The translations under genes were made by a program, and so were the position numbers. The notes under the pieces are model-generated. The model searched no databases. It was not told where the DNA came from and was given only the letters and a program-made list of their open reading frames with translations. From Macrostomum lignano (lineage: Eukaryota), in assembly GCA_002269645.1 (NCBI GenBank), contig NIVC01002716.1, forward strand, positions 13,450 to 77,449: DNA of 64,000 bases. Direction: 5' to 3'. Each line of letters starts with the position of its first letter. Within the stretch, counting starts at the first letter, position 1. This document shows, piece after piece, positions 26,005-59,039 of this stretch.

Positions 26005-26362
26005 GTTTTATTTTTACTAGTCCTCTACTAGATTAACGGAATAGTATTAATAACAGGCCTAACCTCCTTGATTAAATGAAGACATAAATAATCGAATTGC
26101 TGCCAGAAATGGTTATTTCAATTGTAGGTTTAGTATTACATTTAAAATTTGATGCGGCAATGCTCATGCTGTCTGTAGCTGCATTGTAGACTTAAATTGG
26201 CCCTACGTGTCGGACGGTGTGTTGCAAATTTATTTACATGTAAACATGCAGTTAAGCATATTAACCAGTTCTAGTATCAATAAATTTAAAACAGACTTCC
26301 ACAAACGACGAACAGGAGCAGTTTTTAATGAAGAACGACAGCAAGCACAATCAGTATGTGGT

Positions 26363-26378
26363 GGCCCTGAAAAGGGCC
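26363..26378 (-). terminator. Histone 3' stem-loop of H2B
   Basis: AAAAC GGCCCT TTTC AGGGCC ACCACA. Confidence 0.95.
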
Positions 26379-26458
26379 GTTTTATCGTTCAGATTAGATT
26401 AGCCTAGGCACGGCTAGTTGATCGCCACTTTTGCCAGACGCCTTGCAAATTGCAAAGT

Positions 26459-26824
<366 letters not shown>

Positions 26825-27639
26825 TTCAACCGGATTTTCTAAAGTGATATAAACGAGATGATATGTGATCAATTTGAGTGTAACTGCTTTTACTAATTTC
26901 ACGCTTTATTATATATTCTGGGTAGGTGGACTAGAAAACGAAATTTTATTAAGATCGATAATTTCAGACTTTGTATCAGCCAATGAGGGAGCTCCAAATT
27001 TCTAGCCTTGTTAATAAGAGTAATTTTCTTATCACACTACTATTAGTGGCATGTAAAGTTTTTTTCTTTAAGGTCTTGGCGAAAAACGGCAGAAAAAAGG
27101 TTGAAGAAACAAAGAAAAAAGTAACTTGGTAAATGGTAATGAATACTTATTTCAGTGGCGGCGCAGGGGGGGGGGGCAGCTGCCCTCATGTGACCACAGG
27201 TCACTGCCTTAAGGGGGGTGACCACCCCATCATCCCCACGGTTTGAGATATGGAGGGAGAGATCAAATGAGCAATGATGTGACTCCCGTCTGGCAAGCTG
27301 TGATCGAATTGGCTTCTATTGCTTTAGGCTCGTTCACAGGTTTTTGAATAATAAAATTACATTAGTCTGCGGGTACACTGTACACCTAAAATATCCTTAC
27401 GATCTGCCAACAGCTTCAGATTTATATCCCTGCAGCCCTAGCCTTCTCACTAGCCTGCATGCTCAAAGATGAATAAATCAAAGCAAGACAAATTAAATTT
27501 GTGATGATTTTCACCTGACTAATATTGTCCATTAGGAGCTCCCACTGTGTTGGGTTGGTTTTTAAGTTTGGTGGAAGTGGTGAGGATGAGGATAATAGCC
27601 CAGCTGCAGATATACTATACTAGTCGAGAATGGAATGAT

Positions 27640-27753
27640 TGAATTATTGCAAACCGGGATCAGGATCCCGATGGTCAATTTCGGGATTTTCGAATCCCGG
27701 ACAATTGTGATCCCGGAATTTCGGGATCCCGAGCGATTGATTTGCATTCCCTA
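27640..27753 (-). mobile_element. End of a hAT-like element with CCCGGGAT-type subterminal repeats
   Basis: Ends TTGCATTCCCTA (reverse complement TAGGGAATGCAA), similar to TAGGGATTGCAA at 33172. Confidence 0.55.
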
Positions 27754-27906
27754 CGCTGCACACTGCCAACAAAACCGGCCAGAGCTTGCATGGTGTCAGG
27801 GGTCCTCTTTGTACATCTAATTTGTTGGCTTTGAATGTTTCTTTTATTGCTACAAAGATCAAGTTGCAAAGCGTATGGCATACTTTAAATGCAATTTGGC
27901 TTACGG

Positions 27907-28142
27907 CAGGGATGGGCAAGACTCCGGCCCACAAACCCCTCTATTCGGCCCTCAGGTCTTAAAGTCCTTTGAAACTTCACGATATCAATCCATCTCGCTT
28001 AAGGTCTCTCTAGTATTCTCTCGCCTCTCCTCTCTTTCCATTCCTTCCCTCTACCTGTACCTTTCTCCCATTCTCTGGCCCGCAGTCAAGCTAGCTAGAT
28101 TCTCTATCTCACTTGCGGTATTAAAGTTATAGCGGACCCCTG
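27907..28142 (+). mobile_element. hAT/Charlie-like MITE (236 bp)
   Basis: Ends CAGGGATGGGCAA ... GCGGACCCCTG; TSD GCTTACGG/GTGTACGG (6/8); internal homology to 34688-35815 and 59040-59230. Confidence 0.75.
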
Positions 28143-28389
28143 GTGTACGGACGGTGACGGTCGTCAAAAACAATAGCTACTGGGTATTTAAGCTGCATAA
28201 GGATTAATTGCATTTGAGATTTTGGTTTCCACATGTACTAATACACTGCAGTTTAAAACATCACGTACTGGTAGCCAGGTAGCGGGAAGCGGGGATACAT
28301 GCGCGTCATGTAGGGTGCTTTTAGTTCGCTGTAGAATCTCTGCTAATTCATTTTGCCGTGAAAATCGGCATACTTTAAAATTTGCGGTT

Positions 28390-28545
28390 ACCTAAAAAGG
28401 GCCGTTTTAGCGTTCAATTCAAATTGTAAGTGCTTATCCCTATGGTCCCGTGCCGATAATTCTAATTTTATCCACTTCCACACGGATCAGTGTCAATAAT
28501 TATGCTAGACTAGCATGTAATGATTAAACCGCGGATGAACTAACT
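28390..28545 (-). other. Orphan duplicate of the H3 3' UTR with a broken stem-loop
   Basis: AAAAGGGCCGTTTTAGCGTTCAATTCAAATT ... TATGCTAGACTAGCAT.TAATGAT...CCGCGGATGAACT matches 28957-29027, with a 70-bp-scale insertion. Confidence 0.85.
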
Positions 28546-28949
28546 GCCTATAGTTTTCCACTTCTTTATCAGATTGACATTCGTAAAGCTTCTCAGAAAT
28601 AAACGAGCATTAGGGATATATCTAGAATCATCTTAATTTTGTATTGTAATGAGCTAAAAATTTAATTTTACTAATAAATTGCTGTGCTTAATTGCATCAA
28701 GGTAACAAAGCATACATGTAGACTAGACTTAAATGCATGCATTATAGATTCACTACAACTAGATAGAATTCGGATGCAGAATTTTAACGCCTATTTCATT
28801 GACAGATAAGTCATACACGTAATTCTAGAGTGTCAACACAAATGTGTATTAGTTTAGCAGCTTGGAAGTTAGGTCGTGCCTAATGGCTGTGCTGCTGTAG
28901 TGCAAGTTATAGTTTTGTCTTGCGATTTACGACATCATTAAAATGTGGT

Positions 28950-28965
28950 GGCCCTGAAAAGGGCC
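28950..28965 (-). terminator. Histone 3' stem-loop of H3
   Basis: AAAAC GGCCCT TTTC AGGGCC ACCACA. Confidence 0.95.
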
Positions 28966-29036
28966 GTTTTAGCGTTCAATTCAAATTATGCTAGACTAGC
29001 ATCTAATGATAAGCCGCGGATGAACTTGAAGGCAGC

Positions 29037-29471
<435 letters not shown>

Positions 29472-29580
29472 TTAGGTAGGTGGCTGATGGTTGAATATTT
29501 TTAAAAGTTTATGACTTCAATTTTGCGCAGACTATGCTTTATATGTAGTCTGTACTCATTAGTATAATTTATTACAACAG

Positions 29581-29646
29581 TTCTGATTGGCTAAGAAAAA
29601 AGTTAAAATATTCAACGAACCTTTTCATCTTTCTTTACTAACAGTA
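29581..29646 (-). promoter_or_regulatory. H3 promoter: CCAAT box (TTCTGATTGG) and TACTAACAGTA element
   Basis: The same two motifs occur upstream of H2A (31852-31927). Confidence 0.6.
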
Positions 29647-30492
29647 GGCAATGCCTAATTCAAAATTTAGTGTTTGGCCCTGCCGCCTAAGGGCCCTAGG
29701 CCACTGAGGCCAGAATCAACACTAAAAAGGCTTTTAACAACTTTTTTACAACCAATTTACAATTTTTTAGGCCTAATTTCACATTTTAAACCATTGATTG
29801 CACAATCCACATTCCCGCCAGACTTAAACAGTTGTATTTTTGTCCAAAGGTATCACTATCAGATATCAAAGTATAATGATCATTACGTACTCTCCAATCC
29901 AAATAATTGACCAATTCTCACTTTTAGACCACCAGAATGTGTCCATTTCATCGAAGTTTCAAAATGCTACTTTTTATCTCGTAGTGGCCTCAGGAACTTA
30001 GGAATCGAAAAACCATTCTTCGATTGATGCGCTGTGTTCATGTTCATGGCTTGTTGGGGAAGCTATACAAAGCACACACGTACACTCGTTGAAAATGGCA
30101 ATTTATAACGCATGAGTTGTAGTGTTAATGTGTTTAATGTGTAATAATGATAACTGTATGATGCATGTGCAATGCATTGCATGTACTGTAAGGGTATATG
30201 TACACCGGTACATGTTAATTGCATACCACTTTCTAAGCAATTTAATGAATTATGTACGAGAGTACGAGCTACATGTGCAGACGGCAACGGCAAGGTTAAG
30301 AGAAAATAAGTAATACATGTACATTGTACATGTATTAAACATTCATTATGGTTGGATAGTCCGCGGATAACCCCGGCTTTTATGCTACCGACATCCTGAT
30401 TAATTATTAGTAAAAAGGTCACGCAGTTCATCGCTATTCTCGCATTTATACTGTTATTCTGAAGTATTTTATGTATGACTTACAAAATTCTT

Positions 30493-30508
30493 TGCCCTTA
30501 AAAGGGCC
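30493..30508 (-). terminator. Orphan histone 3' stem-loop
   Basis: AAAAC GGCCCT TTTA AGGGCA, about 720 bp beyond the H2A stem-loop. Confidence 0.7.
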
Positions 30509-31213
30509 GTTTTAGCATTTATTTAAGATAACGTAACCGGTCACTAACATCTAGCAAGACCCGTGCATCGGTTTATTGCAGCTTTCAAATTTAAACAATT
30601 ACACGCCAGCACAATTTTTTGGATAATTAGATAAACTACACAAGCATTCAAAGCTGTTTATACAACTACTCTTGAGAGCCAGTCTATCAAGACAAGCAGA
30701 ACCTGGATTAGATTTACATTGACATTTGACTGGACTGAATGGCCTAGAAAATTTTTACCATTATCCTGACTCGTTGAACCATTAAATTAGTCCGACTAGG
30801 ATCCAGAATAAATCTTGAATTTGAGTCTTACTTGGTGCTTGACTCAAAGTTTTTAACCAAGTCCAAATGCAATGCATTCTTTAAATTTCGTATATTTTTA
30901 TTTTTAGTTGAACTTTTGAGATAGAGTTTAATGCGCTATACAGATGCAATGAAGATAATAAGAGTGTATTTCTGCAATGCTTTTGCGGCTGCCTAGGCCC
31001 TAACTAGCTGGCTGTCTGTCATTGTTATCATAGGTGAGTTATGAGTATGCAGAGATGCAGACTACATCGATTGCCATACCAGCGATTAAAAGGACAAGTC
31101 ACAGGACTGACTTAGGCTAAGCGATACAGTATGTGAAATGTTTACAATTTTATACAATCGTCAATCGAGATGAACACGAACAGGATGTCACGACTACATC
31201 ATCTTAATGTGGT

Positions 31214-31229
31214 GGCCCTGAAAAGGGCC
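31214..31229 (-). terminator. Histone 3' stem-loop of H2A
   Basis: AAAAC GGCCCT TTTC AGGGCC ACCACA. Confidence 0.95.
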
Positions 31230-31333
31230 GTTTTAACGTTCTTAAGAGCGCAGCAATTACTTGCTGTCGCTGTCTGGCTGGGATCTAGCAAAAGATGCGC
31301 TCAGCCTTATAGCTTCCGTTATGCGTAGACTGT

Positions 31334-31753
<420 letters not shown>

Positions 31754-31851
31754 TTAAGAGTTGTATAGCAGTTTGGATACCCTCCTCTGTGAAATATATA
31801 GGCTCTTGTTCCTACAAATAATCTTAGCAACGGTTAGCAACGGGGCTGAAT

Positions 31852-31927
31852 TCTGATTGGTTAAGAAGTTTCTAAGTTAAGACAAAAATTAGCAAGTAAA
31901 ATTTTACTTGTTACTCTACTAACAGTA
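31852..31927 (-). promoter_or_regulatory. H2A promoter: CCAAT box and TACTAACAGTA element
   Basis: TTCTGATTGGTTAAGAA and TACTAACAGTA, shared with the H3 promoter. Confidence 0.6.
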
Positions 31928-32573
31928 ACACAATAAGAACACGTTAATTTTGCAAATTTGCAAACATTCTTGAATTGGATGGATACATTGCAATTTATAT
32001 TTTTTTATTCACAGAGCCGGGTAAACATGCAAAACAAAAATTGTACTTAATCTCTCCCCGACTGTCGAGTTGCACAAAAAATTGGTTGACACGTAGCTTT
32101 TCCGAGTCGGACAATGCTGTATAAAAACATGAGATAAAATTTCTTAGCTGACGAAATTTTTTTAGCTGACGAAAGCATTGGCATTTAGGAATCTTTAGGA
32201 CCACCGAGGCCTTAAATTTGACCCGAGGGCCCAGCTGCAACGCCGTCCAAAATCCTGAGGGCCTCGTGATTCATGCCGAGAGTTACTGTCAGCCTGTACA
32301 GGAGTCCTGCTGCTAACCTTAACTACAGAACCCGTTCATGATGCGTTGTTTGATGTCGTCTGCCCGAATTTACTTTTCAGTGTGGCGTCTTTTGTTGTCA
32401 TTTTTAGAAAGCAGAGTCAAGGAATTTTTTAATTGTGATGAAATTAAGTGATTTGCAATAGTCATCCTATGGGTTTGATGTGATTGTGCATTGCCATTTA
32501 ACAGCTCTATACAAGTTAAATGTAAACAAGTATCAGCACACAGCTTTTGTTCACATAACTGCATCACTGCCAG

Positions 32574-38063: not shown

Positions 38064-41000
38064 GGCAGGCAGACAGGCAGACAGACAGCAGAAAGCGGAC
38101 AACAGAAAGCGGACAGCGGACAACAGAAAGTGGACAGCAGACAGCAGAACATGGACAGCAGACGGCAGAGAGCGGACAGCGGACAACAGAAAGTGGACAG
38201 AGACAACAGAACATGGACAGCATACCCCTCCAGGTTCAGCTGGCTCAGCGGGGGTCTCCCGGCCTGCAGCAGCTCGGCGTGCCGGTCGATGAGCCTCTGC
38301 AGTCGGTTGACGAACTCGACGGTCTCGGCGAGGACCTTCGCTGCTGCAGTGGCGGCGGCGAGTTTCTGGCAGCCGGGCGACTGCGAGCTGTCGTTGAAGA
38401 CCACGCAGTCAGCTCCAGACGGGTCGGCAGCGGCACCGCTGCGGTCAGAGTTGAACAGCAGGCCCTTGATCACAGCCTGGCTGTTGTCCTTGCGCGGCAG
38501 CAGGTGAATGTGCGGCACCCTGCGGATTGGCAGTCATTGGCAGTCATGGATGCTTTATTGGGATGGGTTCATGGACTCAAGAGGATCTGTAAGAATAGAG
38601 CGCAAGGGTCCAAGACAGGACACCATAATAGAATAGTTGCCAGTTTGACAGCGTGTCAGCGTCATCTAAGTACCCCGAGGACCTCTGAGGTACCCACAGG
38701 ACACACTCAGGTACCCTCAGGACAGCCGCACAGATACCCCCGGACACAGCCGCCCAGCTACTCCCCGGACACAGCCGCACAGATACCCCTGGACACAGCC
38801 GCCCAGCTACTCCCCGGACACAGCCGCACAGATACCCTCGGACACAGCCGCCCAGCTACTCCCCGGACACAGCCCACAGATACCCCGGACACAGCCGCCC
38901 AGCTACTCCCCGGACACAGCCGCCCAGCTACTCCCGGACACAGCCCACAGATACCCCCGGACACAGCCGCCCAGCTACTCCCCGGACACAGCCGCCCAGC
39001 TACTCCCCGGACACAGCCGCACGCCCGCACAGATACCCCCGGACACAGCCCGGACAGCCGCCCAGCTACTCCCAGGACACAGCTGCACAGATACCCCGGA
39101 CACAGCCGCACAGATACCCCCGGACACAGCACAGATGCACAGCCAGACAGCTCACTTGAAGGCGATGGAATTGGCGGGCGCAAGGCACTCGGAAGCCGAG
39201 TACTGCATGTAGTGGGAGTACAGGTCGCAGATCTTCTCCTGAAAGTGCGCCCGCAGCTCCGCACAGGCGTGCCGGCCGCGGCAGGGCCGGTCCGGATCGA
39301 ACGGGCTGCTGGCGCTGTGACCGCCGATCCCGGCGGCTTCGGCCGAGCGGCGCTGGCACCGGACAGCGGCCAGCCTGGCGGTGAGGTCGGCGGCCCGCTC
39401 CGGGTCCTGGCGCATGGCGGCCAGATAGTGCGCCTCAGCTCCGGAGTAATTGGAGAGGCTGGGCGAGAGTGTTAAGTTAAATATATATTGTAAAATAATG
39501 TTGAGAAGGGCGACTGGAAATTAAACAGACTTAGTGGCACAGGGACAGCACACAGCGGTAGCATATTCTTGGATATTGCTCAGGCTGTACCTGAGGGTTG
39601 TAGCTCAGTGGTCAGAGCGTCGGACTCACGAATGAAAGGTCAGGAGTTCGATTCTCGACCCACTCAACAATTTGTGTCCTTGAGCAAGACATTTAAGTCT
39701 GCATTGCTTCAGTTCACTCAGCTGTGAAATGGGTGCCAGCATTAGCTGGGGTAATTGATGGTGTGCGTGGTGACCCCTTCCCCCCCCCCCCCAGTCTTTG
39801 GACTGAACAGCCGTACGCAGCCTTCAGATACAGCTGCGGCTGAGCTGTCGGTTACACAGGTAACAGCACAGGTGGTTTCACAGGTAACAGCACAGGTGGT
39901 TTCACAGGTAACAGCACAGGTGGTTACACAGGTAACAGCAGAGGTGGTTACACAGGTAACAGCACAAGTGGTTACACAGGTAACAGCAGAGGTGGTTGCA
40001 CAGATAACAGCACAGGTGGTTACACAGGTAACAGCAGAGGTGGTTTCACAGGTAACAGCACAGGTGGTTACACAGGTAACAGCACAAGTGGTTACACAGG
40101 TAACAGCACAGGTGGTTACACAGGTAACAGCACAGGTGGTTACACAGGTAACAGCACAGGTGGTTTCACAGGTAACAGGAGAGGTGGTTACACAGGTAAC
40201 AGCACAGGTGGTTACACAGGTAACAGTACAGGTGGTTACACAGGTAACAGCACAAGTGGTTACACAGGTAACAGCACAGGTGGTTTCACAGGTAACAGCA
40301 CAGGTGGTTACACAGGTAACAGCACAGGTGGTTACACAGGTAACAGCACAAGTGGTTACACAGGTAACAGCACAGGTGGTTTCACAGGTAACAGCACAGG
40401 TGGTTACACAGGTAACAGCACAGGTGGTTACACAGGTAACAGCACAGGTGGTTTCACAGGTAACAGGAGAGGTGGTTACACAGGTAACAGCACAGGTGGT
40501 TACACAGGTAACAGCACAGGTGGTTGCACAGATAACAGCACAGGTGGTTACACAGGTAACAGCACAGGTGGTTTCACAGGTAACAGCACAGGTGGTTACA
40601 CAGGTAACAGCAGAGGTGGTTTCACAGGTAACAGCACAGGTGGTTACACAGGTAACAGCACAAGTGGTTACACAGGTAACAGCACAGGTGGTTACACAGG
40701 TAAAAGCACAGGTGGTTACACAGGTAACAGCACAGGTGGTTACACAGGTAACAGCACAGGTGGTTTCACAGGTAACAGCACAGGTGGTTACACAGGTAAC
40801 AGCACAGGTGGTTACACAGGTAACAGCACAGGTGGTTACACAGGTAACAGCACAAGTGGTTACACAGGTAACAGCACAGGTGGTTTCACAGGTAACAGCA
40901 CAGGTGGTTACACAGGTAACAGCACAGGTGGTTACACAGGTAACAGCACAAGTGGTTACACAGGTAACAGCACAGGTGGTTTCACAGGTAACAGCACAGG

Positions 41001-46329: not shown

Positions 46330-46450
46330 TGGCAACTTTAGTAAAATGGCTCAAGAGTACAAGACTCTGAAACCTGCAGTTGCTTTAGTTCACCAAGCTA
46401 TAGAATGGATACCAGCATTAGCTGGGATAATTGACAGTGTGCACGTATGT
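46330..46450 (+). mobile_element. Degenerate fragment of the same SINE family
   Basis: TTGCTTTAGTTCACCAAGCTATAGAATGGATACCAGCATTAGCTGGGATAATTGA matches the SINE core. Confidence 0.7.
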
Positions 46451-50254: not shown

Positions 50255-52813
50255 TTATTGCTTACGGTATCGTCCAAAGAAGCTGCTGTCAGAGTTCTGC
50301 TTCTGTTGCTGCTCTTCCTGCTGCTGCTGTTGCTGCTGCTGAACTTCTTCATCAATTCGCAGGTTCAAGCTCTCCCTCAGCTTGGTGCAGTCCGCTTTGT
50401 ACTTCTCCTTGTCTGCTCTCTCTTGGGCGAAGTCTCGCTCATAGTCTTTTAAGGTTGACTGCAGCAGATTTTTTGTATCCTCATTTTGTTTCAGCTCCTG
50501 CTGAGCCTCCTCAAGCTTCGCCTGCAGCTGGGTCAGCCTGGTCTCAAGTCTCTTGCATTCGTCCTTCTTGCGACAAATATCCTGCTGCAGCTCTCGGTCC
50601 CCCTGCTCCAGCTGGTCCAAACGGCGCTGCCGCTGTTCCAAGCACTCGCGCATTCGTTCAGCGGTGCTGAGGGCCGAGTCTCGCTGCTGCTGCGCCTGCT
50701 GCACCTGCTCCGCGGTGGACTTGCGCTCCGAGTCCAGCGATGCGCGCAGCTGGCGGATCTGCTCGTCAGCTACCGACCGAGACTGGAAGTGGGAGGGATG
50801 GGAGAGATGTAGGACCATTTTTGTAATTAATGTTTTCCCATGCTATCTTTCGAGGCATCCTTGTGCATCCAAGCCACACCATAAGTCTCAATTTATTATC
50901 ACCTGCTCCGCCTCCTTTCTCTTCCACGTCTCTTCATTCATTCTTTGATAGAGCCGCTCCTCTCGCTGTTTGAGCTCGGCAACGCGAACGTCGTGCTCAT
51001 CGGCCTGAGCCCTATGCCGATCCAGCAGCTCGTCAGCTCTCGCTCGGTAATTATTCTCCTGCAAATGTTGCAGCAGAGAGCAATAAAGTATCTAGGACTT
51101 ATCTATGCAGTTAATTGATGCTCCCTAAGAGTCCTCAGTCAAGAAGCCACCTACGCTTGTGCATGCGCATGTACTTAGAAGCCTAAGTTGTCGAAGTTAA
51201 CGAACACCGTCAACCACCTTACCCTCTCCTGGCAAGCCGACAGCTCTTGCTGCTTGTCAGCAAGTTCCCTCTCGGCTGCAGACAACTTCCGCTGCTTATC
51301 TGCCAGTGAATCTTCTGCAACCGACAGCTTCCGCCGATTATCTGCCAGTGCTTCTTCGGCGGAAGACAGCTTCCGTTGCTTATCTGCCAGTGCTTCTTCG
51401 GCAGAAGACAGCTTCTGCTGCAAATTTGCTTCCGTCTCGGCCAGTTTTTTCTGCAGCCTTCTATCCGACTGTTCCATTTCTTCCAACTTCTTCTGAACTT
51501 CAGTCAGCGACTTTCGCAGCGCCTCCTCGGTGCTTTGTTGCGTGTCCAGCTCTCGCTGCAGCCGTTGGACCTCCTGGCTGGTGGAGGTGGCTCTATCCGA
51601 TGCCTGCTTCAGCTGCTCCTTACAGGCGCTGAGCTTGGCCGCCTTGGTGTCCGCCTCCTTCCGAGCCATGCCCAGCTCGATTGCCTGGCTTTCCTTGGCT
51701 TTGCTGTGAAAAAAATTGAGTGTGAGTTTTAGGTGGACACTTCAGGAACGCTGCTTTAAATAATCAGACTGTAAATAAATCGATGATATGGTAGATTGTG
51801 TCAGATGGTGCATCCTCACCTCAGCAGATTTCGCTCCTCTTTCAGCTCGGCCTCTAGTTTGAGTATCCGATGTTTCAGCCTATCTGACTCGCTACTGCTC
51901 TGCTCTCGCCTGCGGGAAACGGGTGGCTCAATTTTCAGCAATGTTCCGGACATGGTCAGAAATATAGGACTTGAGTAATAAAAAATTCCCAAAAGAGCTG
52001 AGCACCCACTGCGTGTTTCGCTCGGCATTGAATTGTTCCTGCAGCTGCTCCAAGCGCAGGTTCAGCACCACGACTTTGCGATTTGCATCGGCGAGTCTTT
52101 GAAAAGGGTGTCGATATATTATGGAACGTTTAATCGTTATAATCACACATAAAACAAGAGTAAAAACAAAAATGCCCCACTCACTGCTTCTGGAGGTCAT
52201 CATTCGTCGCCTTCAACGCACGAAGCTCTTCGCTCCCGAGCGCAGCTGGAGCTTCTGCTGATGGACGCGCTTCCACGCTTGGCTCGAGCGTACTTTCACC
52301 TTGGGAAGAATCTGACAGGAGCTCGTGCAGGAGGTCTTTGATTTGTAAATCATAATCTGACTTTGTCTTTTCTAACTGATGCTCGGCCTCAGCCAGCTTC
52401 TGATTGAGCTGCTCCAACTCTGCCGCGTGTTTTGCCTTCAAATCGTTCTCGGACTTCAGGTTGAAAGCGCAGATGGCGTCCATCTGCTTCTTGCACGTCT
52501 GCTTCTCCGTTGCCAGCGCCTTCTCATGCTGCTCCACCAGAGCCGCGCGGTCAGCTTGGTGGGAGTTTTGAAGCTGCTCAATTTCAACTCTGTGCTTTTC
52601 CTGCTCAGCAGACAGATCTTCTTTAAACTGAGCGCTCGATTCGTCTCTCTGCTTTTCTAGGGCCTCTGCATGCTGACGTTTGAGCTCGGCGATCTCCAGC
52701 TTCTGCTGCTCAACTACCGCTTCTTGAGTTCGGTTTCGCTCTTCCAGCCTAGCTTTTTCTGCTTTAAAATTCTTTAGCTGAGCAGCCAACTGTTGAATTG
52801 GATTGGCAGTCAT
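50255..52813 (-). CDS. Long coiled-coil protein with a C-terminal UBAN-like motif (NEMO/optineurin/ABIN family-like); 6 exons (52813-52185, 52096-52010, 51909-51820, 51703-51223, 51058-50903, 50782-50255), 656 aa
   Basis: All five GT-AG junctions join in frame (1971 nt). LQSTLKDYERDFAQERADKEKY resembles ABIN2 YKDDFMSERADRERA and NEMO YKADFQAERQARE; five 14-aa internal repeats in exon 4; polyQ tail. Confidence 0.8.
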
Positions 52814-53513
52814 GGTTGTACTTGTTGAAGGGTGGTCAGGCAATCAAGTTTTATGTAGCGAGCTCAAATTCAGCTACCTGTCCTACTCAAATATTCAGTT
52901 TTCGCTTTAAAATATTTGGTTATTTTGTAACCAATTCCCCAAACGAGAATTGAGGGACCTACAAGGCACTAAAAGCAGAGTAGCTTCGTATGCTTTTTAC
53001 GTCATAAAATTTTCTGGAAATAAGGTACTGTCTCAGTACAGCAAGCAAGCACTGCACTTCATTGGTCTGAGAGCGCGCATAAGCAAAGCCACAAGAAGTG
53101 TACTTCTTGCGCGGAGAACAGCCGAGTGTACACTGGTCCCGTCTGTTTCCAATTTAACGCACTGCTAAATGTACACACCTAGCCCGAGGACTGTACTGTT
53201 TTAGTGCCTTGTTTCTGCATTGCTGCATTGCGCGGAAAACTCACTGGTTTAAACTGGTGCCATTCTCCCTCCTTTTTGATAAACAGATCTGAAGTGTAGT
53301 TCGCGGGTCGGCTATCGATCAAACACATTTTAGTTGAATTCGGGTTGTGAAATATAAAAAATTGGTTTTGGGAGGCAGGATGCCATACATGACTTTTTCA
53401 TGAATAGATGCTGGATATACTGAAACTGCAGCTAAGCTTGCTCTTTCTCTGAATTAAAAATTTATATAATTACTTAATTAATATACAATTAATATTCAGC
53501 TATAGCGCGGCGC

Positions 53514-53736
53514 ATCTGAAGGCTGCATACGGCTGTTCAGTCCAAGGACTGGGGGTCGCCACACACACCTTCAATTACCCCAGCTAATGCTGGCACCCAT
53601 TTTACAGCTGAGTGAACTGAAGCAATGCAGAGTTACGTGTCTTGCTCAAGAACACAAATTGTTCCAGTGGGATCAGGAATCGAGCCACCGACTTTCAAGT
53701 CGGGAGTCCGACGCTCTGACTACTAGGCTACAATCC
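53514..53736 (-). mobile_element. tRNA-derived SINE (same family as 39595-39829)
   Basis: Reverse complement aligns along its whole length with the 39595 copy. Confidence 0.9.
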
Positions 53737-54156
53737 TCTCCCCCGAACTTAGCTCTTCCCCGAACCAGGGAAGCAAACCATTAGTTCGGGACCGAGAAGG
53801 AAGCCTCGAACTAAACCATTTAAATTCATCTCAGGATACCTCATCGTACTAACGCGGTCTTTGCTAGCAGACGCGCTGTTTCGTACATGATTTTTATGTC
53901 AGGAAGTAGTTCTGCCAAGCTCCACAAGTACATTTTTTTATAATTTATCAACTGACATCAACTGCGTCCACTACGCAGTTCTATTAATAGCCATTACCGG
54001 CGCGGCCTCCCCGCGGCAAGGCCGTGGAACGGCTACGGAGATTCCGGGCTAAGCGCCAACAAACAGCTGTGGCTTGGAGTGAGCCGAGTCGGTACTTTGC
54101 AACTGCAGCACCCTGATCACCAATCTGCCTAATCCATTCTGATGTGAACGAGAAAA

Positions 54157-56272
54157 ATGAGTGAGTAGATTCCATACTAGCTATCAAATGCTGGCAAAGT
54201 TTGGGATGCATATATCATCAATCTGCCTTTTAACACATCAGCATTATGCAAAACTTCGTATTAAATGCCTCAATAATAACTAAACTGAACCTTCAGCAAT
54301 TTACCTGGTTGCCAATGGTAAATCGAAGAGTGACTTCAAAGACCTCCTGCAGGATCATCTAATCAGGGAGAAGCTGACCGTTAGCATTGAAAGATCGTGG
54401 CCAGAAAGTGCAGAGCAATGGATGGAGCTGCTGGAAGACGTCAAAGCCGGAGAGGACAACCTGCTGGTGTTGATCTTTAACAGAGCTCCGGACAGTGAGA
54501 GTAATTTGACCAGAATCTGCAGCTTTGTCATGGACTTGGCAAGTTCATTCAATTGCGTTTACAATGCATATTCGTTTTGCTGTGCACAGCATCAACCCGA
54601 CTGGTTGAATCAACGCTCTGCTTTTTAGTGTGTGGAACTTCGAAGCTGCAGAGTTTACCTGGTTAAACAATTCAAAGACTGCGGCAACAATGCCTTCAAA
54701 GTGAACAGACGAGCTAGGAAAATGCTGCAGTACCTTGACCTGGAGGCTGAGAGTGGAAGCCATCTCAGATTGGTCGAAGCTATTAAAAAAGGTAAGAATT
54801 ACGACTTCCTCGGAGATTAAAATTAGGAGAAAATGCGATATGGGAGAACGGGTTTCTATTTTCACTTGCACAGGTCCTGGCAGCTTCAGCAGTCGCGGGG
54901 AGAGCTTTGCCTGGCAGCTGGTGACCGGATTTCTCTGCCACATCCTGCCGCTCCTTTCCCAGCGGGTCAGCAGTCAGCTGGCCGATAAAGCGGGCACCGC
55001 TCTGCCGGAGGCTTTACGAAGATTCAATGCAAAAGGCGTGGATGCCAGACGGGTTCTCGTTGTGCCAAAGTACTTTCTGCTGCTCAGCAAACCGGTTGCT
55101 TGCGGCCAGAAACAGGCGGAACTGTGCCCCGATCAGCTGTTCCCCGGCTGCCAGAAAATCAGCGACTGGTCGTCCGAGCTGGAGTTTGACAGTCCCGGAT
55201 TCAAGAAGCGAATTCCGGTGTACCTGACCGAGCTGAGAGAGCCACTGCCAAGCGGACACACCCACGCCATGATCTTCTGCGGATTTGCCGCGCCCATCTT
55301 CATCATGCGGCAGCTGGAGCTCAGCAAAAATGAGCGGGGAGAAATATTTGACGACTTCGTATGCGAACTGAGTTACATTCTGAGTCACCCAAGCTCAAGC
55401 CAGCTGTTCTGCGACTTGGGTGGAGCAGCCACGGGGGCCACGGGCTCGGAGTCCTCGACAGTCAGCCTGATAGAGCTGGCCGGCACGGGCGGTGATTCCA
55501 TAAGAAATCAAGTTTTGGAACGAATCGACGAGTACTTGGAGAAGCGGGACTGGGATGCTTGCGACGATTTAAGAGACGAATGGGTCCTCGTTACTTCTTT
55601 GATGAATTTATCCGTAAAATTCAGCTCGTCCTCGTTACTTCTTTGATGAATTTATCCGTAAAATTCAGCTCGTCCTCGTTACTTCTTTGATGAATTTATC
55701 CGTAAAATTCAGCTCGTCCTCGTTACTTCTTTGATGAATTTATCCGTAAAATTCAGCTCGTCCTTCACAACCGAAGTAAAGAGCTCTGTCCGCAACTGGC
55801 TTTCAAGACTTGGCTTCAGAACTAACGAAACTGCGGTTGACTCGCCACTGCTTCCGAGCCAGAGAGTTCTGCTACTGCTGCATATCCAAGATCTCGAGTC
55901 AAATGACGAGCGTATGCACACCCAAATTCGACATGCTGTTGAGAATGTAGGCAGCTCAGTTCAAGCTGAAATGTCACGTTGACAACCCAATTAGACCTTT
56001 CGCTTGGCTGATGCTCTCGAGCTTTAACTTTTCAGATGCATCGCAGTGATTGCCAAAACATTTTCGTCATCATAGAGACAGCTCCAGGAGAGCACCAGGC
56101 TGCCTTCAAATCCCTGCCGAACATTCTGCGGTGCCTTCCTGACAAATGCACAGCCGCGGTGACCGGCTTGAAACAGCTGAGCTCGCTGAATTTTTCGTTC
56201 CCTGATGGAACTCAACGCCTGGCAGGGTTTAGCGATCTGATCAAAGCTTTTAGTAAGATTTTAAACTTCTAG
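54157..56272 (+). CDS. TIR-like / STING ligand-binding domain / TIR-like protein; exons 54157-54160, 54297-54538, 54629-54791, 54874-55946, 56036-56272; as assembled, truncated at 55646 by a 44-bp quadruplication
   Basis: STING motifs SFAWQLVTGFLCHILP (cf. GLAWSYYIGYLRLILP), GFKKR (GIKDR), FAAP (YATP), LSKNERGEIFDDFVCELSYIL, SIRNQVLERI. N-terminal MTIYLV..FKDLLQDHL..LTVSI..LLVLIF..RVYLV..QYLDL shows a TIR-like alpha/beta pattern. Intron 2 requires a GC-AG donor. Confidence 0.75.
55584..55764 (+). repeat. 44-bp exact tandem repeat x4 inside the STING gene's coding exon
   Basis: GTCCTCGTTACTTCTTTGATGAATTTATCCGTAAAATTCAGCTC at 55584, 55628, 55672 and 55716. Confidence 0.98.
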
Positions 56273-56277
56273 GAATC

Positions 56278-56428
56278 CAGGGGCTTTAGCACCAGGGGCT
56301 TTAGCACCAGGGGCTTTAGCACCAGGGGCGCCAGCACCAGGGGCGCCAGCACCAGGGGCGCCAGCACCAGGGGCGCCAGCACCAGGGGCGCCAGCACCAG
56401 GGGCGCCAGCACTAGGGGCCCAGCACCA
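56278..56428 (+). repeat. 15-bp tandem (CAGGGGCKYYAGCAC)n just after the STING-gene stop
   Basis: About 10 copies in two variants. Confidence 0.95.
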
Positions 56429-57164
56429 AAGTAGTTGTTGGGGAACTGCTAAAATTTATAGCCAGTTTTTCGCCTGTATTTCTGGGGAGTGGAGGCCCCT
56501 CTTGGTGCCTTGGCAACGCCCATGAGATATGTTGATGAGCATTAAGATCTCAAGGCATTCCATTTCAGAGCTGGACTCGAAACCGGACTGTGCAGATGAA
56601 TGTCTGCCTTTGACTTCCATGAGCTTCGCAATGGCGGCCAACTGTTGGTTCGGCTTTGCGAATCGATTGCTGCTGAGTGAGTTGAAACTTAATAATATAC
56701 ATCGAATACACTCGCAATAATAAGAATAGTAATAATAATTATTATTATTCGATTTAAGATTAAAATTTCGGGTCTCAAAGCCATTAAGTCTTGAGTCAAT
56801 GGGCAAAACACCTTGTCCTCTGAGTAAGATTTTTTAAAATCGAAACTTTATCCGATATTTCTTGTTCAAACTTATCACGGGAGCACTAGGAAATTTCCCG
56901 CTGCACTTAAAAAGGAACTGAACTTCACTTTCTACCCCGCATGGCATTTCGGGCAGGTCTTCTTCTTCTCGTAAGGGATCTTTGGTCTCGCAGTCCTTGT
57001 TTCGCTAATCTAAGCGGTGACAGGGTGCGATTTAATTCTGGATTGGAAATTTCCAGGGCATACCTTTTGACTAAGTTGCATCAGTAGTATAGAATAAGGA
57101 CAGAATTAAGTCTTGAACTCAGTTTAATTAAATTCTAAAGTCAGCATATGTTGAATATAGCTCG

Positions 57165-57580
57165 TACGGTGTGGCACCGCCTCCGGCCTGCTCCACCCCG
57201 CCTCCGGCCTGTCCCACCCTGCCTCCGGCCTGTCTCATCCTGCCTCCGGCCTGTCCCACCTTGCCTCCGGCCTGTCCCACCCTGCCTCCGGCCTGCCCCA
57301 CCCTGCCTCCGGCCTGCCCCACCCTGCCTCCGGCCTGTCCCACCCTGCCTCCGGCCTGTCCCACCCTGCCTCCGGCCTGTCTCATCCTGCCTCCGGCCTG
57401 TCCCACCCTGCCTCCGGCCTGTCCCACCCTGCCTCCGGCCTGTCCCACCCTGCCTCCGGCCTGTCCCACCCTGCCTCCGGCCTGTCCCACCCTGCCTCCG
57501 GCCTGCCCCACCCTGCCTCCAGCCTGTCTCATCCTGCTTGCCTCCGGCCTGCCCCACCCGCCTCCAGCCTGTCCCACCCC
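57165..57580 (+). repeat. 21-bp minisatellite (CCTGCCTCCGGCCTGTCCCAC)n
   Basis: Direct reading. Confidence 0.95.
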
Positions 57581-57715
57581 GCCTTCAGGGCCTCCCTCTC
57601 ACTGATTGGCCAGCAGACAATCAGCGACGTGGGCCAGACCCCACCATTTTCCTACGTTTATATCGATTTTGGTAAGCTTAAATATTTACGGCCAGCATGC
57701 CCAATAATTCCAGGC

Positions 57716-58180
57716 ATGAACGCCAGCACCGGCCGAAATTCAAAGCCGATGTTCGATCCGCCCTACTGCTTTGTGATCCCATCAAGCGGCCGGTTTCCCG
57801 ACGAAAACCAACTCTACGATCAACTGTACAGCATTGGCGTCCGCTGGAGCGTTTCGGAATTCCGGCTGGAAGGCAGACGCTTCACATTTCGCGTGCACCG
57901 ATGGGGCGACGTCAGCATTGCATTCGAAGTGCCCGCGTCGGTGCTGTCGATACATCGACAGGCCGACAGTCGCATCGGCGGCGTCCGAGCGAAGAGTTTG
58001 AGCAGCCAGCTGGCCGAGTTCGGCGCAGAGCTGGACAAGTACTGCGCAAATAGCGGCGGCTGGTTTCGAGTGATTCGGTGGGATGACAGCGTCTTGAGAG
58101 TTGGCGCAGAATGCCCTGACTTGAGCCGGGTAGAAAGTCTTATGAGCTGCCTGGGAGAAGCGTGCAGTATCCGCCCGTGA
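57716..58180 (+). CDS. Uncharacterised 154-aa protein, possible RRM-like plus KH-like modules
   Basis: Non-repetitive GC-rich ORF; ATG preceded by a 42-bp GT-AG intron (57672-57713); alternating beta/alpha hydrophobic pattern. Confidence 0.55.
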   Translation: MNASTGRNSKPMFDPPYCFVIPSSGRFPDENQLYDQLYSIGVRWSVSEFRLEGRRFTFRVHRWGDVSIAFEVPASVLSIHRQADSRIGGVRAKSLSSQLAEFGAELDKYCANSGGWFRVIRWDDSVLRVGAECPDLSRVESLMSCLGEACSIRP

Positions 58181-58315: not shown

Positions 58316-58560
58316 ACCGCATCCCGTTTCTCATCCCGTTTCTCATCCCGTTTCTCAACCCGTATCTCATCCCGTATCTCACCCCGTTTCTCACCCCGTT
58401 TCTCACCCCGTTTCTCAATCCGTTTCTCATCCCGTTTCTCATCCCGTTTCTCATCCCGTTTCTCATCCCGTTTCTCATCCCGTTTCTCATCCCGTTTCTC
58501 AACCCGTATCTCAACCCGTATCTCACCCCGTATCTCATCCCGTTTCTCAACCCGTATCTC
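58316..58560 (+). repeat. 12-bp tandem (TCTCATCCCGTT)n
   Basis: Direct reading. Confidence 0.95.
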
Positions 58561-59039
58561 ATAAGTTTGCTCAGTTACAAGTATTCGATTATGACAACTT
58601 TGTGTTTCTTAGGGTTTACAGTAGTCTGTCTGTATTCACTGGTCCATAGGGCGAAGACAATGTGTACATAATTAATTTTTGACATCCCACGCCAAAAACT
58701 AAACTGGAATGTATTCAGAAATACATGCAAATAGTATAGTAAAAACTATATATAATGATTTGATATCATTCTGTAACTATTGAGGTTTTATGCTACTTTT
58801 ATCGTACTCATATTTGAGTCGATTCAAAGAGTAGCATGAAAAAGTTACTGGTCTTGTCGATTTTCTTATTAAACTACATGTACTGCATGTATCGAGAGGA
58901 CTTCCAATTTGACTAGACGGGTCCTTGGCTACAACTGTGCATCCCATCATATCTACCAATGAAACCTTCAGTAAACTGCAGTCCCGAGAGACTGACAACA
59001 CAAAGACAAAGGCATTAAAGTCCCGAACAGACAGACACT

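Follow-up and report, generated by a model that had tools for sequence, protein, structure and literature searches.

The segment between positions 50,255 and 58,180 of the DNA analyzed (the window, 64,000 nucleotides of contig NIVC01002716.1 from the flatworm Macrostomum lignano) raises the question of whether an innate-immunity receptor and a ubiquitin-binding adaptor are encoded here as one functional unit. The initial annotation had placed at this locus a UBAN-motif gene, a divergently oriented gene of TIR-STING-TIR type and a third, small RRM/KH-like gene. The segment contains two genes, not three: a coiled-coil gene on the minus strand and a STING-like gene on the plus strand, placed back-to-back. 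The proposed start codons and their spacing of about 1.3 kb were confirmed, as the GT-AG model of six exons starting at ATG 52813 yields the 656 aa of the called gene, the GenBank product P0005 begins at ATG 54157, and 1,343 bp lie between the two. We consider it probable that the locus comprises one plus-strand gene of the TIR-STING kind and a separate UBAN-motif neighbour, any functional coupling between them being speculative. The features are as follows.

50255-52813, minus strand: coiled-coil gene, 656 aa; exons 52813-52185, 52096-52010, 51909-51820, 51703-51223, 51058-50903 and 50782-50255, with GT-AG at 5/5 introns and fitting phases
50395-50550, minus strand: UBAN-like segment of its last exon, QELKQNEDTKNLLQSTLKDYERDFAQERADKEKYKADCTKLRESLNLRIDEE, core DF..ER from ~50434
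51272-51421, minus strand: 42-bp tandem repeat (14 aa, in frame) x3.6 in exon 4, from TRF and translation
52814-54156: spacer between the start codons, 1,343 bp
53514-53738: SINE-like dispersed repeat in the spacer, with blastn self-matches at 39593-39829 and 46360-46441
~53980-54078, plus strand: alternative 5' exon of the STING-like gene, where gene model P0001 maps
54157-54160, 54297-54538 and 54629-54791, plus strand: exons 1-3, N-terminal α/β domain of ~135 aa
54874-55583, plus strand: exon 4, first STING ligand-binding-domain-like domain (D1)
55584-55764, plus strand: perfect 44-bp tandem repeat x4.1 (TRF)
55716-56252, plus strand: middle TIR-like α/β domain, continuation of exon 4/5 (to 55946) plus exon 6 (56036-56252)
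56277-56428: 15-bp minisatellite x10 in intron 6 (TRF)
56569-56676, plus strand: exon 7, helix α1 of the second STING-type domain (D2), ...LPLTSMSFAMAANCWFGFANRLL; P0001 and P0006 map here and phases fit
57179-57584: GC-rich 21-bp minisatellite x19 in intron 7 (1,037 bp; TRF)
57714-58180, plus strand: exon 8, remainder of D2, stop codon 58178-58180

On the plus strand, everything from 54157 to 58180 belongs to a single gene, whose product is named 'Stimulator of interferon genes protein' in UniProt. When spliced, its exons in the window keep phase and encode 713 aa that share 98.6% identity with the 712 aa of the full-length paralogue P0006; all of these exons are joined in P0001, P0006 and P0007. 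The junctions of exons 1-3 reproduce P0005 exactly; the intron after 54297-54538 is GC-AG. The supposed third gene (57629-58180) was ruled out as a gene of its own, since the same domain lies within one polypeptide in P0006, P0002 and P0003; 57714-58180 is the last exon of the STING-like gene, joined via exons 56036-56252 and 56569-56676, and it looks apart from the rest because of the 21-bp array in intron 7. D1 and D2 share one chain also in the divergent paralogues P0002 (43% identity) and P0003 (30%).

For the C-terminal half, the AlphaFold2 (AF2) model matches the TIR-STING proteins of oyster and bacteria as well as STING ligand-binding domains (LBDs). Therefore, the architecture would be (α/β)-STING-(TIR-like)-STING in a soluble protein of ~713 aa, as none of its windows of 19 aa reaches a Kyte-Doolittle value of 1.6 and hence no membrane helix is predicted. 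Foldseek with this half gave 161 matches at E<=1e-3, and the best 50 of the 161 are all STING or TIR-STING. The best one, the oyster (Crassostrea gigas) TIR-STING 6WT7 (E=1.7e-9), extends over 361 columns and the bacterial TIR-STING 9LMQ (E about 1e-7) over ~350, so that the TIR part is covered along with the LBD. The TIR-like character of the middle domain, with βαββαβαβ order in the model, is thus supported, by structure only. D2, in which exon 7 is the helix 167-190, is shown by the model to have the STING LBD fold (Nematostella STING 5CFN: E=1e-6, TM(target) 0.62, 190 columns), at a moderate mean pLDDT of 62 and with an underlying alignment of M. lignano paralogues only. By sequence, D2 is not detectably STING (hhalign E=0.3; no match in the PDB profile search). 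The RRM/KH-like identity given to exon 8 is accordingly rejected, since together with exon 7 it makes this STING fold.

From the TIR-STING-TIR call, the STING family stood. The layout was incomplete, the second STING-fold domain having been missed, and Pfam and PDB profile searches found TIR in neither α/β domain, leaving only the middle one TIR-like. For the N-terminal α/β domain, a flavodoxin-like or TIR-like character is indicated solely by the order of its secondary-structure elements (β-α-β-α-β). AF2 modelled the N-terminal half poorly (pLDDT 44), and Foldseek with that model gave weak, non-significant matches to flavodoxin and TIR (E>=0.085). No domain of the window's STING-like protein reached a curated Pfam threshold, and PADLOC returned nothing.

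As neither this model nor its matches are informative for D1, the call of that domain rests on modest sequence statistics. BLASTP against the human STING LBD (a reference 100% identical to PDB 6DXL_A) gave E=4e-7 with 27% identity over 188 aa, and hhalign against a 13-sequence vertebrate STING alignment gave E=0.0021 over 137 collinear columns, with a probability of 13%. The family profile had 61 matches in the PDB, with STING in 60/60 among the matches listed (best E=0.038), and Pfam STING_LBD matched paralogue P0003 below threshold. D1 is thus STING-like by sequence. It would instead not be STING, and only the C-terminal unit would be a TIR-STING, if the similarity were a chance one in a single amphipathic helix: the HMM matches to PDB and Pfam fall mainly over helix α1 (E 0.0014-0.04), the N-terminal model is unreliable, and hhalign finds no match between D1 and D2. 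This we regard as very improbable, because the BLASTP and hhalign alignments are collinear over 137-188 residues, crossing β1, the lid, the EYATPL-like strand and helix α3, the profile matches listed are STING throughout, the predicted secondary-structure order of D1 fits STING, and oysters have the same doubled layout.

Within the TIR-STING kind of metazoans, the STING-like gene represents a flatworm member that has diverged strongly. Oyster and flatworm are both spiralians, and the oyster 6WT7 protein is likewise soluble, without transmembrane helices, and carries a TIR-like domain N-terminal to the STING LBD. However, the flatworm sequences are linked to no STING at threshold by Pfam or phmmer, their N-terminal α/β domain resembles TIR in secondary-structure order only, and layouts vary, P0002 lacking the middle TIR-like domain and P0003 having an additional N-terminal α/β domain; 6WT7 is a 2'3'-cGAMP complex, whereas ligand binding by the flatworm protein is putative. 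The doubled layout is already known from oysters, in which one class of STING has two domains each of TIR and STING type (PMC11103948). TIR-STINGs are rare in eukaryotes, with an unclear role of their TIR, and those of metazoans are thought to stem from independent domain shuffling (PMC10732462). The TIR-STING of bacterial CBASS (PDB 9LMQ/9LMR; Sphingobacterium faecium filament, PMC9402430) is also soluble with TIR preceding STING, but it is a single unit, encoded in an operon with a CD-NTase, and bacterial TIR-STINGs are proven NADases; the flatworm unit is doubled, its gene has introns and no synthase nearby, and PADLOC models do not match it. Canonical transmembrane STING (human STING1; Nematostella 5CFN) resembles D2 in fold and D1 in sequence, to the extents given above. 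Both domain alignments retain, without variation, the helix α1 G-F pair (human G166-Y167) and an Arg that aligns with R238. The flatworm protein differs from transmembrane STING in having two LBDs per chain, no four-helix membrane domain and no C-terminal tail with TBK1/IRF3 motifs, and in D1 the contact residues S162, R232, E260 and T263 are replaced.

If it works like the TIR-STINGs of bacteria and oysters, the protein would bind a cyclic dinucleotide (CDN) in the pocket of paired STING domains, either D1 with D2 in one chain or domains of different chains. Binding would drive oligomerization, as in the bacterial CBASS model from which the mechanism is taken, where CDN-induced STING oligomerization activates TIR, and the TIR-like domains so gathered may signal by NAD+ cleavage or by recruitment of a TIR adaptor. 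On the other hand, cGLRs are reported missing from most flatworms (PMC9980059) and no cGAS-like gene was found within the window. The STING-like domains could then be structural relics that do not bind CDNs and serve another ligand or a scaffold role, cGLR signalling having been lost. The extreme divergence (27% identity to human STING, no Pfam threshold reached), the loss of several D1 contact residues and the lack of a nearby synthase gene fit such a loss. Nevertheless, we find it rather unlikely, given that across paralogues of 30-43% identity both domains keep, without exception, an aromatic residue at Y167 and an Arg at R238, that the family has been expanded and maintained, and that 'most' flatworms are not all; bacterial or dietary CDNs could also serve as ligands.

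In the coiled-coil protein, the UBAN call was borne out at the level of the motif: its C-terminal region has a UBAN motif of the ABIN/optineurin/NEMO type, as read from the sequence, with the core LKDYERDFAQERADKEKY at ~50434 and the pattern Y..DF..ER..KEK. This core is expected by chance ~2e-7 times in the protein and ~4e-6 times in the six-frame window. The 52-aa segment matched UBAN constructs in 6/6 PDB matches (TNIP1/ABIN1 x4, optineurin and TNIP2), in register on DFxxER and singly non-significant (E 0.1-0.5). Pfam CC2-LZ was among the top weak matches (E=0.013), its 16.4 bits being far under the cut-off of 35.3, and Pfam gave otherwise nothing beyond coiled-coil noise. As in ABIN1/TNIP1, ABIN2/TNIP2, optineurin and NEMO, the motif (Y..DF..ER..[RK]E[KR]) lies close to the C-terminus within an extended coiled coil; in contrast to NEMO and optineurin, a zinc finger C-terminal of it is absent, and the other homology regions of ABIN, NEMO and optineurin were not detected. 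The motif makes the 656-aa protein, of dimeric-coiled-coil type, a plausible polyubiquitin reader. The 42-bp repeat units in its exon 4 read KLSxAEEALADKQR.

The STING-like gene belongs to an M. lignano multigene family of at least 8 loci: three near-identical copies of this locus, and a divergent cluster of at least five tandem paralogues (P0003, P0002, P0008 and others) on NIVC01000486.1. Members outside M. lignano were not found. A co-regulated innate-immunity module, with a bidirectional promoter shared in the 1.3-kb spacer and a place for the UBAN protein downstream of the receptor like that of NEMO, optineurin or ABIN in vertebrate STING/NF-kB signalling, would be in line with each component being on its own a plausible immune part, with the divergent orientation, in which the alternative 5' exon at 53980 brings the transcription starts to <1.2 kb, and with the presence of the arrangement in 3/3 copies of the locus. 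However, apart from the window the arrangement occurs only in L007 and L008, with spacers 98.7-99.5% identical to that of the window, so that these are very recent duplicates or haplotypes in which it was inherited, not independently retained, and they do not count as independent evidence. Linkage in paralogous loci, the absence of which would count against the module, was seen in near-identical copies, but not at the divergent cluster, where the +/-10 kb around it contain neither a UBAN homologue, with tblastn relaxed to E<=10, nor the motif (a weak negative). Moreover, the spacer holds the SINE-like insertion (tRNA and Rfam searches of it gave no match), and divergent neighbour gene pairs are frequent by chance alone. 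We hence consider the module improbable: the head-to-head placement is adjacency, and functional coupling is speculation.

The window's copy of the STING-like gene carries an expanded 44-bp repeat. The unit is present once in L007, which has an intact 712-aa ORF, and four times in L008 and the window; the three extra copies add 132 bp without shifting the frame, but the second copy places an in-frame TGA at 55644-55646, with which P0005 stops at 393 aa (...KFSSSSLLL). It is a serious possibility, if not the favoured one, that the window's copy and its twin on NIVC01000099.1 are a truncated allele or young pseudogene and the copy on NIVC01001813.1 the functional one, translation ending at residue 393 to leave α/β-D1, with the downstream exons as untranslated relics, undecayed so far. 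The single unit of L007 agrees with it, and no canonical splice pair excises exactly the extra copies: exact excision would require GTCCTC...CAGCTC, and the P0001 model requires a GTTACT donor. Yet none of the downstream exons is disrupted, 3 amino acids differing over 337 codons; exons 5-8 diverge from L007 by 0.82%, as much as exons 1-4 (0.81%) and less than the introns (2.97%); the older model P0001 crosses the array in frame by splicing; and a perfect array, in a draft assembly rich in repeats, could also reflect polymorphism or misassembly. The stop after D1 means that the window's copy yields either the α/β-STING unit only (393 aa) or, if the repeat is spliced out, the full protein.

The plus-strand features that begin at the ATG at 54157 form one gene, not two. 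A splice model of exons 1 to 4 reproduces exactly the GenBank protein P0005 (393 aa; PAA55732.1/PAA90963.1), which is called at 54157-55646 and is listed in UniProt as 'Stimulator of interferon genes protein'. An exhaustive phmmer search with exon 4 against 1.84 billion representative sequences gave three real relatives only, all of them from M. lignano: P0001, an older gene model (100% over the query), and the divergent paralogues P0002 (43%) and P0003 (32%). A 253-aa match from the representative search, P0004, was discarded as a repeat-encoded artefact. P0001, and with it P0006 (712 aa, PAA63807.1) and P0007 of the same cluster, extend beyond the annotated stop of P0005 and match four later exons of the window, the last of which is the third small gene of the initial annotation. 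This segment is instead the terminal exon of the plus-strand gene, contiguous with the preceding ones in P0006, P0002 and P0003; in both divergent paralogues the same C-terminal domain lies in one polypeptide, and no other part of the family is as well conserved. Joined in phase, the exons of the window encode 713 aa, 98.6% identical to P0006, and the 1.4-kb gap that had been placed between the two supposed genes corresponds to an intron of 1,037 bp, which a 21-bp minisatellite repeated 19 times fills.

Exons of the plus-strand gene and GC-rich minisatellites in and beside it
54157-54160, plus strand, exon 1
54297-54538, plus strand, exon 2, followed by a GC-AG intron
54629-54791, plus strand, exon 3
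54874 onwards, plus strand, exon 4
55716-55946, plus strand, later exon matched by P0001, P0006 and P0007
56036-56252, plus strand, later exon matched by the same proteins
56277-56428, minisatellite of 15 bp x10 in intron 6
56569-56676, plus strand, later exon matched by the same proteins
57179-57584, minisatellite of 21 bp x19 in intron 7
57714-58180, plus strand, terminal exon matched by the same proteins
58320-58562, minisatellite of 12 bp x20 just downstream of the gene

The region is eukaryotic in character, with short introns and many minisatellites, and the window, which covers positions 13450-77449 of NIVC01002716.1, ends where the contig ends; one locus of that contig, L003, is 100% identical to 26037-32447 of the window. 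The three minisatellites listed give long spurious ORFs on both strands in the raw ORF list. Neither the 154-aa ORF of the supposed third gene nor P0001 was on record by exact look-up. The older models P0001 and P0007 use an alternative 5' exon (53980-54078 and 54352) and an alternative donor/acceptor pair (54494/54679), which shorten the N-terminal α/β domain; these 5' differences represent either alternative isoforms or mis-predicted models.

The stop codon that ends the annotated 393-aa product is borne by a repeat. A perfect 44-bp tandem repeat (x4.1, 55584-55764) lies within the coding region, and its second copy reads ...TCG TTA CTT CTT TGA, the TGA at 55644-55646 being the stop in question. 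The three extra copies amount to 132 bp, so that the overall reading frame is kept. Of the other copies of the locus, L007 (NIVC01001813.1) has one 44-bp unit and an intact 712-aa ORF, and L008 (NIVC01000099.1) has four units, as in the window. In the older model P0001 the greater part of the array is spliced out from a weak GTTACT donor. Downstream exons of the window are intact and diverge from L007 by 0.82%, against 0.81% in exons 1-4 and 2.97% in the introns. The product of the window allele is either a truncated or a full-length protein.

Standard domain searches see little of this family. Pfam, applied to the raw ORFs of each of the three supposed genes, returned no STING, TIR, UBAN, RRM or KH domain. 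For D1, the first STING-like domain (exon 4), the window sequence had no Pfam match and no phmmer match in PDB, and STING_LBD (PF15009) did not match the window ORFs, P0001, P0002 or P0006 at E<=10; the paralogue P0003 scored 18.5 bits against a cut-off of 27, over helix α1 only. BLASTP of D1 against the human STING ligand-binding domain (LBD; the human sequence is 100% identical to PDB 6DXL_A) gave E=4e-7 with 27% identity over 188 residues. A profile built from D1 of three paralogues matched 61 PDB sequences at E<=10, and among the matches listed 60/60 were STING, the best at E=0.038; hhalign against 13 vertebrate STINGs aligned 137 columns collinearly, from helix α1 as far as helix α3, at E=0.0021. 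For residues 1-393 AlphaFold2 (AF2) yielded a poor model (pLDDT 44), with which Foldseek placed STING entries at E ~0.16-0.4 amid noise. Together these comparisons indicate that D1 is STING-like, at a modest but consistent level. At the positions of the human ligand contacts D1 has F at Y167, R at R238 and Y at Y240, with S, G and A at R232, E260 and T263; S162 (human numbering) is also lost. A word-indexed homologue search found no homologue with D1 and P0001 only with the family alignment.

The C-terminal half is best described by its predicted structure. An AF2 model was obtained for the P0006 segment, which differs from the window product at three positions (S383F, N502K and L558Q), from an alignment of M. 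lignano paralogues only. Its mean pLDDT is 62, with ~70-80 in the core of D2, the second STING-fold domain (exons 7 and 8), and the order of secondary-structure elements in D2, α1-β1-(α)-β2-β3-β4-α2-α3-β5-α4, is that of the STING LBD fold. Searched with Foldseek, PDB yielded 161 matches to the model at E<=1e-3, and the best 50 of 161 are all STING. The oyster TIR-STING 6WT7 ranks first (E=1.7e-9, 361 columns), the bacterial TIR-STINGs 9LMQ/9LMR second (E ~1e-7, ~350 columns), and isolated LBDs follow, from Nematostella (5CFN; E 1e-6, TM(target) 0.62) and from human, duck, bovine and coral STINGs. The model thus assigns to D2 a predicted STING LBD fold. Since the alignments to the TIR-STING entries cover both domains, the middle domain, between D1 and D2, is TIR-like by predicted structure and placed as in known TIR-STINGs, directly N-terminal to a STING domain. 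These structural matches dispose of the RRM/KH identity that had been guessed for 57629-58180, because the best 50 of 161 are all STING. The two TIR domains of the initial annotation fared differently: the middle one is supported by the structural match to 6WT7/9LMQ, and the N-terminal one shows a weak α/β pattern only.

By sequence D2 is more elusive, with no STING in the PDB profile search and E=0.3 in hhalign against vertebrate STINGs. In this non-significant alignment (E=0.3) an invariant G-F pair, an invariant Arg and an invariant Glu of D2 are seen, the Arg aligned to R238 and the Glu to E260; the invariant G-F (human G166-Y167) and Arg (R238) would be found in both D1 and D2, with the same proviso that the D2 alignment is non-significant. 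Direct hhalign of D1 against D2 detected no similarity, so that an origin of the two STING units by duplication is not demonstrable by sequence. As to TIR, neither TIR, TIR_2 nor SEFIR appeared at E<=10 in Pfam, nor did profiles from the alignments of the N-terminal and the middle domain retrieve any from PDB. Within the middle domain, the Glu of DER in the window aligns to Asn in P0003, and D-L-E-S after βC is invariant. No 19-residue Kyte-Doolittle window reaches 1.6, so the protein has no membrane anchor.

The N-terminal domain (residues 1-135) has a β-α-β-α-β pattern in a low-confidence model, with weak, non-significant structural matches to flavodoxin or TIR-like folds; these, and the lack of TIR by sequence, leave the label of TIR unjustified for this domain. 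Its hhalign comparison with the middle α/β domain covers 27 columns only (E=0.015). The architecture is (α/β)-STING-(TIR-like)-STING. It varies within the family: P0002 is without the middle domain and has a short D1-D2 linker, and P0003 carries an additional α/β domain at its N-terminus. On NIVC01000486.1, at the loci L010 and L011, at least five copies of the divergent paralogues lie clustered in tandem.

STING-like paralogue copies on NIVC01000486.1
L010, 14469-15860, paralogue copy
L010, 17048-18376, paralogue copy, with no called gene
L010, 23913-25232, paralogue copy
L011, 10001-13266, paralogue copy
L011, 20597-21907, paralogue copy

A degenerate D2 fragment is also present at L011 17305-17544. 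The automatic UniProt names of near-identical members (P0001, P0007, P0010) differ among 'Death domain-containing', 'SEFIR domain-containing', 'RWD domain-containing' and 'Stimulator of interferon genes protein'. None of the Death, SEFIR, RWD or STING domains is found in these members by Pfam at E<=10, and the discordance suggests borderline profile matches. 'SEFIR domain-containing protein', the name of P0007, is the sole soft sequence hint of TIR, and two family members are already labelled as STING by these names. PADLOC models gave no match, and no description of the family was found in the literature on Macrostomum or flatworm STING. The M. lignano family is a new, very divergent member of the known STING/TIR-STING proteins.

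On the opposite strand, a gene of six exons was assembled from 52813 to 50255, with 5/5 introns GT-AG and all phases fitting. Its product has 656 aa, span and length being equal to those of the gene called on the record, and is almost entirely coiled coil, for which Pfam returns generic coiled-coil noise only; the exact sequence is absent from the protein cluster collection by exact look-up. One internal repeat was found by TRF and translation:
51272-51421, minus strand, exon 4, 42-bp in-frame repeat x3.6 encoding 14-aa KLSxAEEALADKQR units

Near the C-terminus of the protein lies a UBAN-type motif, LKDYERDFAQERADKEKY. Six-frame translation of the window contains the pattern Y..DF..ER..[RK]E[KR] a single time, as YERDFAQERADKEK, within the coiled coil, with a composition-based chance expectation of ~2e-7 in the protein and ~4e-6 in the window. 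This motif is in register with those of ABIN1 (FEEDFQRERSDRER) and optineurin (YSEDFHAERAAREK) in PDB, and the 52-aa segment around it has six PDB matches at E<=10, 6/6 being UBAN constructs (TNIP1/ABIN1 x4, optineurin and TNIP2), all in register on DFxxER. The Pfam model CC2-LZ (PF16516) matches a 72-aa segment with E=0.013 and 16.4 bits, below its gathering cut-off of 35.3, and the whole 656-aa protein has no match to it. The sequence beyond the motif, ...CTKLRESLNLRIDEEVQQQQQQQQEEQQQKQNSDSSFFGRYRKQ followed by the stop, is without a Cys/His zinc finger, and the arrangement is therefore more ABIN-like than NEMO- or optineurin-like. A UBAN-type motif is thus present in the minus-strand protein, whose ubiquitin binding is putative.

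Both genes lie where the initial annotation had put them, and the UBAN motif of the one and the STING-like domain of the other are genuine. Whether they form a co-regulated functional module, as it proposed, is another matter, and we regard such a module as improbable. All three copies of the locus show the head-to-head arrangement; these copies are 0.8-3% divergent overall and their spacers are 98.7-99.5% identical. The M. lignano genome is partly polyploid, and copies of ~99% identity are recent duplicates or haplotypes that give no independent information on linkage. Among the M. lignano loci compared, the linkage is confined to these ~99% identical copies, and neither a UBAN homologue (tblastn E<=10) nor the motif occurs within +/-10 kb of P0002, P0008 (a further divergent paralogue) and P0003 in the NIVC01000486.1 cluster. 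Absence of linkage at paralogous loci had been set as one of the refuting outcomes, and within the 10-kb flanks of the divergent cluster it is seen in a weak form. Upstream of P0003 the neighbouring gene is MRP-S34, in the same orientation. In the window, the spacer of 1,343 bp holds, besides the alternative 5' exon of the STING-like gene, one member of a dispersed SINE-like repeat that is ~82% identical to the copy in the upstream TPR-gene region:
53514-53738, SINE-like dispersed repeat in the spacer
39593-39829, minus strand, further copy
46360-46441, further copy

The tRNA-like appearance of 53514-53738 was rejected in favour of this dispersed repeat, ARAGORN and Rfam returning none, and tRNA and Rfam scans of 49-60 kb returned nothing. 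Comparative support for a functional pair is none, and the UBAN gene is at present no more than a neighbour.

By analogy with the bacterial and oyster TIR-STINGs, a cyclic dinucleotide (CDN) would bind paired STING domains, and the resulting oligomerisation would bring TIR-like domains together to give an output. Two STING domains per chain could pair intramolecularly or polymerise between chains. A bolder proposal, to which we would assign only a small chance, is that D1 and D2 of one chain pair as an asymmetric pseudo-dimeric pocket, a single-chain STING, with the TIR-like domains as output and the UBAN protein as a dedicated ubiquitin-dependent adaptor; the locus would then encode a CDN-sensing pathway that is complete and has so far gone unrecognised, in a phylum supposed to have lost cGAS-STING signalling. 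If so, the single-chain asymmetric pocket could recognise asymmetric or unusual nucleotide signals. As a partner, the UBAN-motif neighbour is a cheap candidate.

The useful outcome is a corrected annotation: a single double TIR-STING-type gene with a second STING domain that had been missed. M. lignano is transparent, and RNAi and transgenesis are feasible in it, which makes it a tractable system for questions on the ligands and signalling of such receptors. The doubled TIR/STING layout is common to oyster STINGs and the M. lignano protein, compatible with an origin before molluscs or with independent doubling. Eukaryotic TIR-STINGs are rare, and the role of their TIR is unclear (PMC10732462). 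Flatworms are commonly counted with the animals in which cGLR-STING and Toll-like receptor signalling have been lost (PMC9980059). M. lignano, a free-living flatworm, retains and has expanded a soluble TIR-STING-type family that is too divergent for standard domain searches; one of its members is annotated in split or truncated form in the reference.

Other features of the window were noted in passing. Upstream of the coiled-coil gene, at ~36.8-46.3 kb on the minus strand, there is a large TPR-repeat gene (called product 1,072-1,271 aa) broken by several long minisatellites, e.g. at 39.7-42.7 kb. A GRB2-like SH3-SH2-SH3 frame lies at 11281-12489 on the minus strand, its middle being a proline/glycine-rich minisatellite that is probably intronic. 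A histone cluster comprises an H3 gene (29037-29447, minus strand) with unusual KMPFQ and AVQALQ motifs, together with H2A and a further histone fragment (~31.4-31.8 kb, minus strand, and ~33.8-34.1 kb); at least seven contigs of GCA_002269645.1 encode exactly this H3 protein.
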